A stretch of DNA of 64,000 nt from Salpingoeca rosetta (GCA_033442325.1 JAWQFM010000004.1:2260458-2324457), one strand, 5' to 3'; shown: positions 4,443-13,100, counted from the stretch's first letter. Program-made: numbers and translations. Notes: generated by a model not told the origin, from the sequence alone.

Positions 4443-4773
4443 ATGACTCGTTCGGCGGGCGTCCTGGCAACAAGCGTTGCGTTGGTGCTGGTGGTCTGCT
4501 GCTGCTGTGAGAGCAACGCTGTGCCCGTATCCTCCTCTGCAGGAGTGCGGGCACTCAGCTTCTCCGACCTGTTTGCGAGTGTTGAAGAAGCGACCTTCTT
4601 TGAGAACTGGTACCAGCGCGAAGTGCTTGTGGGTACGCACAACCAGACCCTGGCCAATCGGTTGCTCCCGCTCACCGACGTCAAATCCACCTGCCAATGG
4701 GGTGTGCAAGACAACCGCCAGGCCCACCCTGCCGCACTCCGGGTCAGTACCCCTGTGCGGGTGCTTGTGTTTG

Positions 4774-4834
<61 letters not shown>

Positions 4835-4841
4835 GTTGTTG

Positions 4842-4909
<68 letters not shown>

Positions 4910-6572
4910 CCTGTCCCTGTTTCCACTGTACGCATCTCGCAACGTCTCCTCTCCTTCCCCACCCCCCTCTCCTCTCACACTCACACTCACCCCACCCCCA
5001 ACACCCAACAGATCAAAGAGCAAGGCGAGACACGGGCCGTGTTGTCGTGCGAGCAGATGGAAGACGAGCTCGCTGCTGGTGCGGGCTTGCTCGTGCGCTA
5101 TGAAGACCTCCCCGGCTCCCCTGCCGACACCGCAGTCAAGCAGCTGCAGGACGGCGTGCGCGACGTGTTTGGCACAGAGTCCACCGTCCACCTGTACCAC
5201 GCCACGCAGAACGAGTCGCGCGCCCTCATGCCGCACACGGACCCCTACGACGTCCTCGTGATTCAGCTCCACGGCTCAAAGCGCTGGACTACCTGCACCC
5301 CGTATGGGTACCTGGCAGACGTGGACGTCACGGACGAACGCGCCGTGCGCGCGCACGAGAAGCGGCACAACCTGGAGCACCGCCCTGTTCACGAGTTGCA
5401 AGCAATTGCGCAGTTCACAACAGCGCAGCTGGGCCAGCTGCAGGAGATCAGGCAGCAGCGGCAGCAGGGGTGCACGCGCTACGAGGACACGGCACTGCGC
5501 GGCATGCGCTGCTCCAACTTCACGCTGCGTGCCGGCGACACCATGTACATGCCCAAGGGCATCATCCACTACGCCGTGTCTGGCGCAGAAGGCTCGTCGC
5601 ACCTCACCGTCTCCCTCCAACGCAAGGGCCTGACGTGGGCGGATGCACTGGTGTTTGCAGCGCAGAGCGGTGCGCATCTTGTGGACGCGGATGTGTTTGG
5701 CGCGCGGTGGCGCGAAGCCATAACCGCCGTCATTGGCCGCGATCACGAGGGCGTCTCCTATCTCCAGGCCATGCCATCCTGGCAGCTCAAGCGTGGTGGT
5801 GGTGATGGTGGGGGTGATGGTGGTGGTGATGGCATGTGTAGCGTTCTTGAAGATGAGCATGCAGCACCTGACAGCAGTGACAGCGCCGCCGGTGGCGGTA
5901 GTGGCGGTGGTGGTGAGGTGGATGCATTTGTGCGCACGTTCCAATCGCTGTGTGAGGGTTTGCTGCCCTTTGTGCTCAACGCGTACGAGAGTGCCGGTGA
6001 TATGACTGCGTATGCGGACCCGTCAACGATTGAGTCGCGTGTCTCGCGCGTGTGCAGCGTCGACAGTGCACATGCTGTCCTGCATCAGTTCTGCGCACAC
6101 GGTCGCATGCCAGACGACGTGACGGCGACCACGCTGTCCACGCAGCAAAGATCGGAGGACGAATTGGCAGCAGGAGCAACGGAGGTTCGTGTGCATGTGT
6201 TGATGGGGTTGAGTGCGGGTTGTGGATGCCAAACGGCAGATTAGGTGTGGGTGAGCGTGTGCGGATGCATGGGTGAGCGCGTGGAGGGCTTGCTCTCAGT
6301 GTTGTTCATCACACCACACCTCACACCTCACACACGCATCTCACACACGCATCTCACATGTCCTCCTCCACACCACATGCACGATGCACGATGCACAACA
6401 TACACATCCCATCGCCCTTCCACTGCACGTGTGATGCAGGTGCATCAGCGCTCCCGTCGGTCAACAGACCACGGCTCATACACCTGCTTTGACGGCTGCA
6501 ACACCGATTGCGTGTAAGTACTCGACGAACGTGCGCACATCATGCAAGAACATGTGTGCATATTCATAAAAG

Positions 6573-6640
<68 letters not shown>

Positions 6641-7407
6641 CACGCAACCGTGTCGTCACTTTGTTTCTGAGACTCACACGACTGCATGTGCTGTGACATG
6701 CATTTCCCCACCCCCTTTAACCCACCCCATCACCACACCGTTGATGCACGTGTGGTGGCGCATGTAATCGCTTCCAGCATGATGTGTTCCGGATGTGACG
6801 GCGACAGCTGTGACATCTGCTCAACCACGTGCACGGGCTCATGCGATGAGGACTGCAAGTGCAACCCGGGGTACCATGGCTCTGGCACGACGTGCTACAA
6901 CTGCGCCGACAACTACTACTCCACAGAATACAACTCGAACAACTGCATGCGGTGTGACGACTGCCCAGAGGAGCACCAGTATAGGGCTGGCTGCAGCCGT
7001 GGCACAGCGCTCACGCCGTGTGTTGACTGCGGCACGTGCGAGAAAGACGAGTACAGGGTAGGATGTCGGCAAGGCGAGGAAGGCAATTGTCGTCCCTGTT
7101 ACGGCTGTCAAGCAGGCCGGTACCGCTACAACTGTGGTGGTTTCAGCATTGGGTTCTGCGTCACGTGTGGGTATTGCCCGCCTGGCCAGTTCCGCGATGG
7201 CTGCATTGGCACCAGCCCTGGCACGTGCAAGGACTGCCAGCCATGTCCCGCTGGATACCAGCGAGAGGGCTGCACTGGCACCAGCGGTGGCACCTGCGAG
7301 CCCTGCCCAGAAGGGTAAGAGAGATTCTGTGTGTGTGTGTGTGGGGGGGGGGTTGTGTGTTTGCGGGTTTCAGTGTGTGTTTTGTCTGAGTTTGTGTGTG
7401 TGTGTGT

Positions 7408-7479
<72 letters not shown>

Positions 7480-10400
7480 GTGCGTGTGTGTGCGCGCGCG
7501 CGTGTGTGTGTGTGCATGAGCCCATGTACTTGTGCGTGTCTCTGGTGTCTGTGAGCTTTCTTTGTATGACGTGGTTTGCTGATGTGCACTGCATTGCGTA
7601 TCGCGTCATCCAACGGCTCACACCACCTCCTCACCAACCACCCAACCAACCATCCCCCCCCCCAAACCACCAGCACCTGGCGCCACACCTACTCCACGTA
7701 CCAATGCTTCGACTGCCAGGCGTGCAGCAGCGGGTACGAGCGTGTCTACTGTGGCGGTTCGTCCTCCGGGAGCTGTCGTGGCATCCTGTGCGACGCAGCG
7801 CCAACAGTGGCCCACGCCACCGTTCACGTGACCAACGGTCGGCGGTATCAGAGCACTGCGACGTACACGTGTGGCGCGGGATACGAGCTGAAGAACGCCA
7901 ACCGCAACTCGCTCAGCTGCGCCACCGATGGTTCATGGAGTGGCACGCTGCCAGAGTGTGTTGGCGTTGCGTGTCCGCCCATTTCCCTCACCAACGGCGA
8001 CGTCTCGCCGTCCGGCACCATTCGCTACCCAGACTCAGCCAGTGCGTTATTCTTTCGCGTGTGTATGGCGTGCGTATGCTCTGTGTGCGTGTGTATGGCG
8101 TGCTTATGCTCTGTGTGTGTGTGCTCGTGCTGTGTGTGTCAGTGCTGTGTGTGTTCGTGCTGTGTTGTTTGATGTTTGCCCCGTGTTGCAGGATCCAATC
8201 CTCCCTTCCATCCCTTTCAGCTCACCACCATCACCACCATCACCACCATCACAACTGTTCTTTTCCTTGTTCACCCCCCCCCGTCTCCGCCTTTCAACCA
8301 CCATCCATTAGGCCTGTCGTGCCATGTGGGATATGTGTTGCAAGGCGGTGCCACGCAGTCCTGTCAGGCCGACGGCACGTGGAGCTTTCCGGACCCTCCA
8401 TCCTGTCAGCCCCTCTATTGCTCGCCGGTCACGCCCCCTGAGAATGGCGCCGTGTCGTACAGCAACGGCCGCCGCTATCCGTCCACGGCAACGTTCACGT
8501 GCAACAGCGGCTATGTGCTTGAGGATGGGGACGCCGAACACACGTGCAGCGCAACAACGCATGTGTTTGTGGGCGAGACGCCCAAGTGCCTGCGCCCCAC
8601 GTGCCCAGCCCTGCCGCCCCCCACCCATGGCAGTGGGGGTGCTGCTGCCAACACGCTCCGCTACCCTGCTGCTGCCTCGTTCTCCTGCGACACGGGGTAT
8701 GTGCTCATGGGGCCGGCAACGGTGCAGTGCAAGGAGGAAGGGACGTGGGCCACAGCTGCGCCGACGTGCATTGGTCGCCTGTGTACGAAGGTAACTACCC
8801 CAGAGAACGGCCGTGTGACGTACAGCAACGCACGCCGCTACCCGTCCACGGCAACGTACACGTGCACGGAGGGCTACGAGGTGGTCGGTGCGGCAACACG
8901 ACAGTGCCAGGCCGACAAGGGCGAGTTTGATGGCGTGGATGCAACGTGCAGGGGCAAGCTGTGCCAGCCTCTCTCAGCACCTGCCAATGGCACCGTCACC
9001 TTCACGCCACGCAGCTTCAATCCCCGCTACCCGGCAACCGCCACCTTTGCGTGCCTGGATGGATATGTGCGCATTGGTGCTTCGACAGCGGAGTGTGATG
9101 CAGACACGGCGTGGTCAGCACAGCCACCGCGCTGCCAGCTCGACTGCGACCCCGGTTACGTCAAGAGCGGTGGTGTGTGCGTGGACGACAACGAGTGCTT
9201 TGATGGCACGCACTCGTGCGACATGAATGCAGCCTGCACCAACACGGCGGGCAGCTACACCTGTGCATGCAATGACGGCTATGAAGGCGATGGCTTCACC
9301 TGTGACGATGTGGACGAGTGCGTGCAGGCAACGCACGGGTGTGACGTGAATGCAGCCTGCACCAACACGATCGGCAGCTACACCTGCGCCTGTGTTGAAG
9401 GGTATGAAGGTGATGGCCGTTCGTGCCACGATGAAGATGAGTGTGCGGATGGCACCCACTCCTGTCATGAAGAGGCAACGTGCACCAACTCAGTGGGCAG
9501 CTACACCTGTGCGTGCAACAGCGGCTTCACAGGCAGCGGTTTCACGTGCGAAGACGTGGACGAGTGCATGGAAGGGACGCACGACTGCGACGTGAATGCA
9601 GCCTGCACCAACACGATCGGCAGCTATACCTGCGCCTGTGTCGAAGGGTACGAAGGTGATGGCGTTTTGTGCCGGGACGAAGATGAGTGTGTCGATGGCA
9701 CTGCAAGGTGTGCTGTCAACGCAACGTGCACCAACACAGTGGGTAGCTACACGTGCGCGTGCAACAGCGGCTTCACAGGCAGCGGGCTCGTGTGCGACGA
9801 CGTGGACGAGTGCATGGAAGGAACGCACGACTGCGACGTGAATGCAGTGTGCACCAACACAATCGGCAGCTACACGTGTGCGTGTCAGACGGGCTACCGT
9901 GGTGACGGCTTTGAGTGCGAGGACAGAAATGAGTGCCTGTACAACACTGCGCCGTGCCACGCACATGCAGCCTGCACCAACACGGACGGCAGCTTCGTGT
10001 GCACGTGTGAGCGCGGGTATGCAGGTGACGGCATTGCCGTGTGCGACGACGTCGATGAGTGTGCGCTCGGCACTCACAACTGCGCCGCAGACGCCACCTG
10101 CTTCAACAGCGATGGGTCGTTCCGGTGTGTGTGCAACTCAGGATTCCGCGGCAATGGCACGGCGTGTGCGGACGTGGACGAGTGTGTGGAGGGCACAGCG
10201 CCATGCGATGCAAACGCCACGTGCACCAACACACCAGGCAGTTTCCTGTGTACATGTGTGGACGGGTTTGCCGGTACGGGCATTGCCTGCGTGGACGTGG
10301 ACGAGTGTCGCCAGGAGACGCACGAGTGTGACCCCAACGCACGGTGCACCAACACGGATGGCGGGTACACGTGCACATGCAGGGACGGCTTTGTTGGTGA

Positions 10401-10834
10401 CGGCTTGACATGTGCCGATGTGGACGAGTGTGCAGCCAGCAACGCAGCCGAGCTGTGCCATGCCAACGCCACGTGCACCAACACGGCTGGCTCATTTGCG
10501 TGCGAGTGCAGTGCCGGGTTTGTTGGCGACGGCGTGCGCGTGTGCTCGCCTCAGCCCAGCGTTGGGCAGAGCGGCACGAGTGCGTCTGTGGATATGGCAA
10601 TCCCCGTGTCGATTGTCGGCGGCGTGATTGGTGTTGTCTTCATTGCGGCCGCAGTTGTCTTTATTGTTCGCCGCAGGCGCCAGGCCGCCGCCGACGCTGC
10701 CTTCACGGTGCGCTTGTTGTTGGTGCCTTGCGTTGGGTTTGCGAGAGAGAGAGAGGGGGGGGGGGGGGTGCTGTGGTGTGTGTGTGTGTGTGGTGTGATG
10801 TGCGTGGTGTGTGTGTGTGCGGTGTGATGTGCGT

Positions 10835-10883
<49 letters not shown>

Positions 10884-12380
10884 GTGTTTGGGTGAGTCAG
10901 TGTAAACAGATGCACTGCTCATTCACAGCGCTTTACCCCCTTTTTTTCGCGACTCACGCTGCTCTGATACCACCCGTATGACGCGCAACCACAGGATGGC
11001 AACGCAGCTGCTTCAAGCGATGGCAAGACCGGTACGCAAATGCGCATACAAATATACATGTTTTAGTTGCTGTTACTGTTATTTCATGAACGTTATCAGT
11101 GCAAACGTCGTACCTCTGCAACCGTCTCACGTTCACGGTTTTCCTGCCTTCGACACCACCAACACCAACCACACACACGCACCTACTCACTCACTCACTT
11201 ACTCACTCACACACTCTCCCTGCTTTGCAACTGTGCATCAGGCGGCCTCTTCAAGAACCCGCTGTTCTCTGGACAGGATGGCATGTCCCCAGCACCACTA
11301 CCATCATCGTCATCATCGCCACCACCACACCCAGCGCACGCGTGGAACCCGACATGCTACGATGTCAACGACAGGACTGGCAACGCCGCAGGAGATGGGG
11401 TGTACCATGTTCCAACACAAGATGCAGGGTACGAATTGCCACGAGGGGAAGGCAAGAACAAGAAGCAGCAGCAGCAGGAAGCTGACATGTATCGTGTTCC
11501 CAGCGTGCAAGCGCCGTACGATGTTCCACGCCGCGCGAAGAAGAATAAGAAGGGTACTGATGGCAGTGATGGTGGTGGTCATGAGGATGAGGATGCCTAC
11601 TGTGTCCCCACCGTGCACGCGCCATACGATGTGCCACGCCGCGAACGGAAACAGAAACAACAGCACAGCAGTGGCGATGATGGTGGCGATGGGAGCGTGG
11701 ATGCTGGTGATGAGTCACAGGCGACAAACCGCTACAGCATCAACCCGACATATGCAATGCCGCGCTTTGAAGGGCGGCAGCTGCGAGCAAACCAGACCAG
11801 CACCACAAATGCAAATGAAGATGCCAATGCAAATGCCACCACCACCACCGGCACCAGTGGCAGCCGCGGTGGGCTGGTGAGCGGGTATGTGGAGCCACCT
11901 GCCCGCACACACGACAAGAACCATGGCAGCAGGGGTGGGCAGCGACGCAAGAATCCAAAGCTGCCACCTCGAGTGGGTGCTCCACCTCGCTTGAGTGCAC
12001 GCATTGCCAACGACAGTCAACCACCGCCACCATCATCATCATCGTCATCATCAGCACCGCAACAGGGGACGGCAGAGCCACAGACACTGTCATTTGTTGC
12101 GTCGCGTCACAACAGCAGCACGAGCGTGGGCTACTTGCAGGTGCTGTCTGAAAACGACAACGGACCGTCGGAAACAAACACGGAGCCTTCGTTCGTGTAC
12201 GACCCAACGTGGCAGGGAGCCAATGCCAACAACAGCAGCGGTCACGAAAGCGATGCGGGCAATGCACCAATGCTGGCGAGCAGCTATGTTGTGCTGCATC
12301 GTGGACACACGGAGGAGGTGACGGACGACGATCCAGACTACGTGGACGTGCACACGAGACCAGCCTCCATGATGCAATGA
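4443..12380 (+). CDS. Type I membrane receptor: signal peptide, JmjC (ROX/NO66/YcfD, Cupin_4-like), RSRR, Cys-rich repeats, 6 Sushi/CCP, 11 Ca-binding EGF, TM, Tyr-motif cytoplasmic tail
   Basis: Exons 4443-4742, 5012-6184, 6440-6513, 6778-7314, 7674-8041, 8312-10707, ~10995-11031, 11242-12380, all GT-AG and phase-compatible. Signal peptide MTRSAGVLATSVALVLVVCCCCESNA. JmjC motifs PHTDPYDVLVIQLHGSKRW and LRAGDTMYMPKGIIHYA. Repeated DVDEC...CTNTxGSYTCAC. TM IPVSIVGGVIGVVFIAAAVVFIV followed by RRRR. Confidence 0.85.
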
Positions 12381-12454
12381 GTTGGCGGAATAGCGGGTGC
12401 GTGAGTGTAAGTGCGTGAAAGGGCATGTGTGCGTATGTGTGTGTGTGTGTGTGC

Positions 12455-12529
<75 letters not shown>

Positions 12530-13100
12530 CGGGTGATAATAGCATATATGTGTGATGTCAACGTATGCGCGTGAGTTTAGTGAGAACCAATATTAGTGAG
12601 TGCGTGAGTGGGCGACGTGTATGGTAGAGTGTGTGGGTGTAATAGAACCTGCGTGAGGCGGGCGTATGCTCGACCAAGTTGTATGCCTGCTCATTTTACT
12701 CGCCACTCCGTGTTGCAACCATTGTCATGCTGCGAGTTACACGTTGATGCACTTGCTTGTGCGGTGTGTGCATCGTTCCTTTGTTCTTCCCTCTTCCCCC
12801 CCCCTTCTTCTTTCTCCCTCTCTCGCCTTGCAATTGGTGCTTCATTGCCATTTGTGGGTGATGCGTTGGCAGTGCGACAGTATTGTTCTTCTTGCTGTCA
12901 CACTCTTCCGCCTGTAGCACACCACTTGTTTTCCATCTAATACATGACCAAATGCAACGTTGTACTCACGCAAGGAAAAAAAATCGAACGTGCGATATGG
13001 AAGCGAGAAAGTTTTATTTGGGGGCAGTTGGTCATGGGCGGTGAACGCAATTGCCAGCATGTCACCGCATGGCTGTATCGCTGTGTGTGTGTGTGTGTTC

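Follow-up and report, generated by a model that had tools for sequence, protein, structure and literature searches.

Positions 4443–12380 of the window, by which we mean the whole stretch of 64,000 nucleotides analysed here (Salpingoeca rosetta, GCA_033442325.1 JAWQFM010000004.1:2260458-2324457), hold a single gene on the plus strand, whose rebuilt model has eight exons with GT-AG signals at each intron and yields one frame of 2007 amino acids (aa) with no internal stops. Its product joins, in order, a predicted signal peptide, a JmjC domain, an RSRR sequence, a Cys-rich region, six Sushi repeats, 11 calcium-binding EGF (cbEGF) repeats, a predicted transmembrane (TM) segment and a Tyr-rich tail. 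On balance, and by a small preference, we read it as a type I membrane glycoprotein of a choanoflagellate family of ROX-JmjC receptors, with a predicted lumenal Fe(II)/2-oxoglutarate (2OG) hydroxylase, a furin-type cleavage site, a substrate other than the cbEGF repeats and an adaptor-linked cytoplasmic tail.

A ROX-clade JmjC domain on one spliced transcript with a Cys-rich region

The fusion of the JmjC domain to the downstream modules is seen at the transcript level. Reads and contigs were placed on positions 4925–6560, limits set so as to avoid the introns filled with long (GT)n/(CA)n tracts. A contig of 2665 nt from run X4 spans 5560–6184, skips 255 nt bounded by GT..AG, spans 6440–6513 and continues for another 1966 nt, the first 30 letters of which match the opening of exon 4, at 6778, without a mismatch; because of the restricted placement, junction 6513/6778 is shown by this 30-nt loose end and not by a mapped joint. 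A second X4 contig, of 620 nt, ends in exon 2, carries the end of exon 1 as its loose end before 5011, and includes ~166 nt upstream of the ATG; the genomic sequence between the upstream stop (~4371) and 4443 contains no in-frame ATG. All of the junction evidence comes from contigs of X4, a run whose record bears no RNA label and which behaves as RNA, with spliced joints and zero depth in the introns across the stretch covered. The RNA therefore contains junctions 4742/5012, 6184/6440 and 6513/6778, and it is spliced across exons 1–4. Since the longer contig joins exon 2 to exon 3 and runs into exon 4, the JmjC and Cys-rich parts share one spliced transcript.

This evidence also bears on whether the gene model is an artefact that merges a secreted JmjC gene with a separate Cys-rich/Sushi/EGF receptor gene lying in tandem, as could arise if intron 2 were retained and the frame of exon 2 reached a stop at 6244. 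Such an arrangement has next to no probability in our estimation: exon 4 lacks a signal peptide of its own, full-length transcriptome open reading frames (ORFs) of other species show the same fusion, and the two-gene model was rejected on the contig that joins 6184/6440 and passes from JmjC exon 2 into Cys-rich exon 4. Further downstream, the proposed exons 5–8 follow from frame, splice signals and domain integrity. The weakest point of the model is exon 7: position 11099/11100 offers an alternative, in-frame acceptor, use of which would join exon 6 in frame to the tail ORF and replace exon 7 with ~47 CA-rich, intron-like residues.

A pile-up of reads at 5135–5290 (depth up to ~120 in the raw RNA-seq run X21) is cross-mapping from a paralog, with 95–99% identity and a loose end foreign to this gene, GACCTCGTGGACTCC, that encodes DLVDSPAQDH of a paralog on contig 29. 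In the RNA samples concerned, the contig 29 paralog is expressed at a far higher level than the present gene.

By sequence and by predicted fold, the JmjC domain belongs to the ROX (MINA53/NO66) clade. Database searches were run exon by exon. Exon 2 scored 60.6 bits with Pfam JmjC_2 (PF08007; cut-off 22), and in a single-sequence search of the Protein Data Bank (PDB) sequences MINA53 and NO66 were the only matches (E ~1e-6), their H-x-D motif, 2OG lysine and distal His being aligned with those of exon 2. With a profile of 50 family sequences MINA53 reached 1.7e-24 and NO66 6e-19, YxbC and YcfD coming far lower; this profile returned only ROX-clade structures from the PDB, with no FIH or JMJD5 match at E ≤ 0.01. 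When the N-terminus was included, the MINA53 match improved to E 4e-31 and was aligned from chain residue 15 (construct numbering) through an F-F-x-x-[WY]...P-L-L motif.

Structure prediction agrees with this assignment. The AlphaFold2 (AF2) model of the exon 2 product (pLDDT 88.3, pTM 0.87) found its best structural matches in NO66 and MINA53 with both Foldseek and VIA; the VIA Z-scores were 15.9 for MINA53 (root-mean-square deviation 2.2 Å over 151 aa) and 15.6 for NO66 (212 aa), against ~11 for JMJD5 and FIH, and the NO66 alignment paired model residues 1–365 with chain residues 264–506, including the helices after the barrel. Across the 50 aligned family members, which share 22–54% identity with this protein, K190, H286 and an H-x-T motif are kept in all, and H175 and D177 in 48 each.

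The same chain carries features expected of a secretory protein. The putative signal peptide combines an Arg-containing n-region with a hydrophobic core of 18 residues and has S-N-A ahead of its probable cleavage point, and the JmjC domain begins ~25 residues after it, within the same exon. No hydrophobic span separates the JmjC domain from the Sushi/EGF modules, the sole candidate TM segment coming after them; both segments are predictions that draw on hydropathy, on conservation in homologues and on the S-N-A motif at the cleavage site, full-length homologues having signal-peptide-like N-termini. With a signal peptide upstream and no TM segment before the Sushi/EGF modules, the JmjC domain must face the lumen or cell exterior. 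Three cysteines are characteristic of the family, Cys195 and Cys267 (50/50 each) and Cys254 (48/50), two of the three positions being Tyr and Val in MINA53; together with Cys84 of exon 1, which recurs in closer homologues, they are compatible with two predicted disulfides.

An earlier note, made from this DNA alone, had proposed a ROX-type JmjC domain with an N-terminal motif like that of ROX enzymes, an apparently active centre and an extracellular placement. The ROX assignment is upheld by the profile match and Z-scores given above, the motif likeness by the alignment of FF..W/Y with the N-terminus of MINA53 in the full-length family profile, and the placement, by topology, by a signal peptide in the first ROX-fold exon with no TM before the Sushi/EGF modules; the active site appears intact in the retained Fe(II) ligands and 2OG lysine, from which activity itself is predicted. 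Both splice junctions that the note had singled out, 6184/6440 and 6513/6778, are supported by the contig joint and the loose end, respectively, and the JmjC triad, the Lys of GSKRW, FFENWYQREVLV, Sushi, cbEGF, TM and the tail of ~400 aa are all present where it had placed them.

Conserved partners of the JmjC domain and layout of the gene

The gene is one of a family. A search of the S. rosetta assembly (55.4 Mb, 68 contigs) returned 12 loci of the JmjC-receptor type at E < 1e-50, all of which share the layout of exon 1, microsatellite intron and exon 2. Three of the paralogs lie within ~55 kb on contig 29 (541–594 kb; two on the plus and one on the minus strand), forming a local tandem cluster; one paralog product is PTSG_11500, and at least seven paralogs have Cys-rich and Sushi exons 1.5–3 kb downstream. 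Some loci hold runs of N, and the architecture census is limited for four of the 12.

A wider search of 1.84 billion representative sequences gave 1284 relatives, and homologues were found in six other choanoflagellate species. Full-length transcriptome ORFs ('type:complete') come from Hartaetosiga balthica (3090 aa), Salpingoeca infusionum (3044 aa) and Didymoeca costata (1180 aa), accompanied by an N-terminally truncated ORF of 2799 aa from Microstomoeca roanoka, a transcriptome ORF of 2360 aa from Choanoeca flexa and several homologous gene models of Monosiga brevicollis. The full-length homologues have a hydrophobic N-terminus followed by the JmjC domain, and a TM segment close to the C-terminus; truncated ones start with the end of the JmjC module; in five homologues Pfam identifies Sushi, Ephrin_rec_like, HYR and TNFR modules.

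Relatives also occur elsewhere. The haptophyte Prymnesium parvum has JmjC relatives (E 1.6e-22) in the C-terminal half of proteins of 1210 and 1347 aa, and secretory or otherwise unusual ROX-clade JmjC proteins may therefore extend beyond choanoflagellates. Marine metagenome assemblies in ENA contain close relatives at 51% identity, in a 31-member cluster that includes one TARA gene; the representative of this cluster is an uncorrected genomic ORF, because its frame reads through the equivalent of intron 1.

Three elements recur with the JmjC domain. Directly after the JmjC module, and before the first stalk cysteines, stands an R-x-[KR]-R furin-type site. Of eight S. rosetta paralogs searched, seven have it and the remaining one has masked N at that place; it also occurs in the homologues of H. 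balthica, S. infusionum, M. roanoka, M. brevicollis, C. flexa and D. costata, and in 24 of the 40 family members that are long enough, compared with 0.08 per window expected from the rest of the same proteins. Proprotein-convertase P-domain loci are present in the S. rosetta genome. The Cys-rich/Sushi stalk is the second constant partner. Beyond the membrane, 11 of the 20 scanned homologues with a TM have a juxtamembrane NPx[YF] motif, 23–42 aa (66 in one case) past the TM window, and the corresponding LFKNPLF of this protein resembles an FxNPxY sorting/PTB signal.

The features of the gene are collected in Table 1. The Cys pattern of the spliced protein gives six Sushi repeats, with Pfam Sushi hits on one stretch of exon 5 and on five stretches of exon 6; intron 5 interrupts Sushi 2, which is exactly reconstituted when 8041 is joined to 8312. 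EGF_CA matched 11 stretches, all in exon 6, and every one of these EGFs contains both D-x-[DN]-E-C and C-x-[DN]-x4-[FY]-x-C-x-C, a predicted hydroxylation consensus. At E ≤ 1, a weak TNFR_c6 hit was all that Pfam gave for exon 4 and the tail taken together, the 378-aa tail from exon 8 having no Pfam domain at that threshold and so no SH2 or kinase match. Long (GT)n/(CA)n microsatellites occupy introns 1, 3, 4 and 6 and the 3' flank (4745–4905, 6570–6645, 7330–7520, 10770–10880 and 12440–12530), and the S. rosetta paralogs have microsatellites at the same intron positions.

Table 1. Features of the S. rosetta JmjC-receptor gene, in window coordinates.
Feature	Position	Strand	Content	Evidence
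Exon 1	4443–4742	+	signal peptide, then first part of ROX fold	GT-AG model; transcript contig end
Predicted signal peptide	aa 1–26, 4443–4520	+	cleavage motif S-N-A|V	
N-terminal ROX motif FFENWYQREVLV	4596–4631	+	exon 1	aligns with MINA53 N-terminus in profile search
Cys84	4692–4694	+	exon 1	conserved
Exon 2	5012–6184	+	JmjC core (double-stranded beta-helix, DSBH) and helical region after it	Pfam, PDB sequence matches, AF2, VIA
Fe(II) ligands	H175 5234–5236; D177 5240–5242; H286 5567–5569	+	exon 2; H-T-D is 5234–5242	
2OG lysine K190	5279–5281	+	exon 2; Lys of GSKRW	
Family-specific cysteines	Cys195 5294–5296; Cys254 5471–5473; Cys267 5510–5512	+	exon 2	
Exon 3	6440–6513	+	74-nt micro-exon; RSRR, then Cys-rich start (YTC...C...C)	transcript contig
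Furin-type site RSRR	6449–6460	+	exon 3	
Exon 4	6778–7314	+	Cys-rich repeats of TNFR / GCC2-GCC3 (Ephrin_rec_like) type	weak TNFR_c6; Ephrin_rec_like in homologues
Exon 5	7674–8041	+	Cys-rich end, Sushi 1, first half of Sushi 2; Sushi array from 7789	Pfam Sushi 43.6 bits
Exon 6	8312–10707	+	Sushi 2–6 (to 9135), 11 cbEGF (9184–10545), TM, RRRR	Pfam, motifs, hydropathy
Predicted TM helix I1581–V1603	10600–10668	+	RRRR stop-transfer next	hydropathy
Exon 7	10995–11031	+	37 nt; putative juxtamembrane linker	GT-AG, frame continuity
Exon 8	11242–12380	+	cytoplasmic tail; stop codon 12378–12380	frame, motifs
Tail motifs	NPLF 11256–11267; NPTY 11742–11753	+	exon 8; LFKNPLF, NPTY, five Y-x-V-P, 14 Tyr	

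Function of the JmjC domain and competing readings

In the mechanism that we propose, the JmjC domain would act as an Fe(II)/2OG protein hydroxylase in the lumen of the endoplasmic reticulum (ER) and Golgi during transit of the receptor, supplied with the lumenal Fe(II), 2OG, ascorbate and O2 that other lumenal 2OG oxygenases use and stabilised by the family-specific disulfides. A furin-type convertase would then cut it from the stalk at RSRR, leaving it attached or allowing it to be shed, while the FxNPxF, NPxY and Y-x-V-P motifs of the tail would link the receptor to PTB/SH2-type adaptors and endocytosis. Its substrate would be a secretory or surface protein, or the adjoining Cys-rich stalk, rather than the cbEGFs. 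As the constant neighbour of the JmjC domain, the Cys/Asp/Asn-rich stalk is a better candidate for a substrate in cis than the EGFs are; substrates in trans are equally possible.

Several points count against this proposal. In the exon 2 model VIA detected no counterpart of the C-terminal winged helix that canonical ROX enzymes possess, the module ending at ~aa 490. Activity of the domain at the cell surface is doubtful, because Fe(II) and 2OG are scarce outside the cell, and the tail, in contrast to that of some Monosiga members, lacks a kinase or SH2 domain. The raw RNA-seq runs X20–X22 cover the gene at only 1–3x and gave no joints above the reporting threshold on the stretch 4925–6560. Finally, we infer the activity, substrate, cleavage and disulfides of the family alike.

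That no winged helix was detected, together with the position of the domain ahead of a conserved furin-type site, which resembles that of a pro-domain, would also suit a non-catalytic module, be it a cleavable pro-domain, a folding chaperone or a ligand-binding head in which the retained residues bind metal structurally. We regard this as fairly unlikely, since the Fe triad, the 2OG lysine and H-x-T persist in 48–50 of 50 members at 22–54% identity, as expected under selection for catalysis. The conserved furin-type site likewise bears on the possibility, proposed in passages of Iyer et al. 2010 (PMC2938197; NAR 38:5261), of an O2/Fe/2OG (redox) sensor, in which turnover or occupancy of the JmjC domain would alter the ectodomain and signal through the Tyr-rich tail, for example in aerotaxis: cleavage would sever the domain from its transducing stalk unless the two stayed associated. 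S. rosetta does show aerotaxis (PMC5122458), the tail holds many phosphotyrosine (pTyr)-type motifs, and a paper whose title states that 'The last common ancestor of animals lacked the HIF pathway' (PMC5800844) is in keeping with such a role; the supply of extracellular 2OG and Fe(II) is questionable, and this paralog is without a kinase or SH2 domain, leaving a sensor unlikely in our judgement.

The cbEGF array invites another explanation, in which the receptor would modify itself, its JmjC domain β-hydroxylating the Asn of C-x-N-x4-[FY]-x-C-x-C in its own 11 cbEGFs and thereby replacing AspH, the ER-lumenal cbEGF β-hydroxylase of animals. The consensus occurs in 11 of 11 EGFs, domain and EGFs share one lumenal polypeptide, and FIH, itself a JmjC hydroxylase, acts on the β-carbon of Asn. 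Were the cbEGFs a substrate in cis, they should travel with the JmjC domain, and the family census shows that they do not: only this paralog of the 12 has the array (~15–17 kb downstream of each, as far as readable; one locus ends at the contig and three have masked N), the JmjC domain being highly conserved in the other 11, the hydroxylation consensus is present in one of 150 family representatives, and Pfam finds no EGF_CA in five homologues. Nor does the consensus need a new enzyme, because the genome encodes at least six AspH-family (PF05118) loci with 11 matches, strong ones scoring 131–153 bits; they include C6:590980-591441, C15:848624-850918 (a divergent pair), C2:78427 and C9:90997, one product has an N-terminal membrane anchor, and no TPR region was seen in the AspH-family ORFs examined. 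In addition, PMC9994133 gives His or Arg as the residues hydroxylated by the known ROX enzymes. The EGF-substrate suggestion of the earlier note is thus not supported, and self-modification is very improbable. The cbEGF array appears to be a variation in this paralog and not a constant partner of the JmjC domain, which would make the EGF idea a special case here. A combined version, in which this paralog hydroxylates its own cbEGF Asn and the 12 JmjC receptors more broadly are O2 sensors behind choanoflagellate aerotaxis, is improbable too.

Prior description and comparison with known JmjC systems

The class itself has been predicted computationally since 2010, and this gene is an S. rosetta addition to it. 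Passages of PMC2938197 describe receptor-like proteins of Monosiga in which extracellular JmjC domains of the MINA/NO66 clade are combined with GCC2/3, Ig, disintegrin or Sushi modules; they propose cell-surface protein hydroxylation or redox sensing. The earlier note's statement that no protein of this architecture had been described therefore has to be withdrawn, and the two functional readings, hydroxylase and sensor, also date from 2010. Our literature search found no later paper and no experimental study of extracellular ROX-JmjC receptors, and the RIOX1/RIOX2 phylogeny paper PMC6006756 does not mention choanoflagellates.

What we add is transcript proof of the JmjC/stalk fusion in S. rosetta, a census that counts 12 paralogs in this species and finds homologues in six further choanoflagellates, and three conserved features beside the JmjC domain, namely the furin-type site, the family-specific cysteines and the juxtamembrane NPx[YF]. 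To our knowledge, JmjC/ROX oxygenases are known by experiment only as intracellular enzymes, and an extracellular ROX enzyme, if true, would surprise many enzymologists. S. rosetta is genetically manipulable, which makes a lumenal or extracellular ROX substrate and oxygen reporting a testable question.

With MINA53 (RIOX2), NO66 (RIOX1) and YcfD/YxbC, the protein shares the JmjC_2 (Cupin_4) fold, the H-x-D...H triad, the 2OG lysine, H-x-T, the N-terminal F-F-x-x-W/Y motif and, in the predicted structure, helices past the barrel. Those enzymes are intracellular, act on ribosomal proteins and have a C-terminal winged helix, whereas here a signal peptide precedes the JmjC domain and the family has an insert of ~60 aa with conserved Cys, identity being ~20%. 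Like AspH, the protein is by topology a candidate lumenal Fe(II)/2OG oxygenase, and it carries 11 copies of the cbEGF consensus recognised by AspH; unlike AspH, none of its exon products is matched by PF05118.

The closest likeness is to the Monosiga receptors, as passages of PMC2938197 present them: an N-terminal extracellular ROX JmjC domain in a type I membrane protein with GCC2/3-type Cys-rich and Sushi modules, and a lineage-specific expansion. In contrast to them, the S. rosetta protein has 11 cbEGFs, a module that those passages do not list, and its tail has pTyr/NPxY motifs only, without the SH2 or kinase domain of some Monosiga members; the furin-type site, the family-specific cysteines and the juxtamembrane NPx[YF] are likewise absent from the passages. 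They also report a secreted metazoan JMJD5-like family and an extracellular FIH1-like expansion in Monosiga and stramenopiles, which resemble the present family in having a JmjC domain in the secretory pathway, conserved disulfide cysteines and a predicted role in hydroxylating surface proteins. These families represent other JmjC clades, while the profile of the S. rosetta family matches only ROX structures (E < 0.01).

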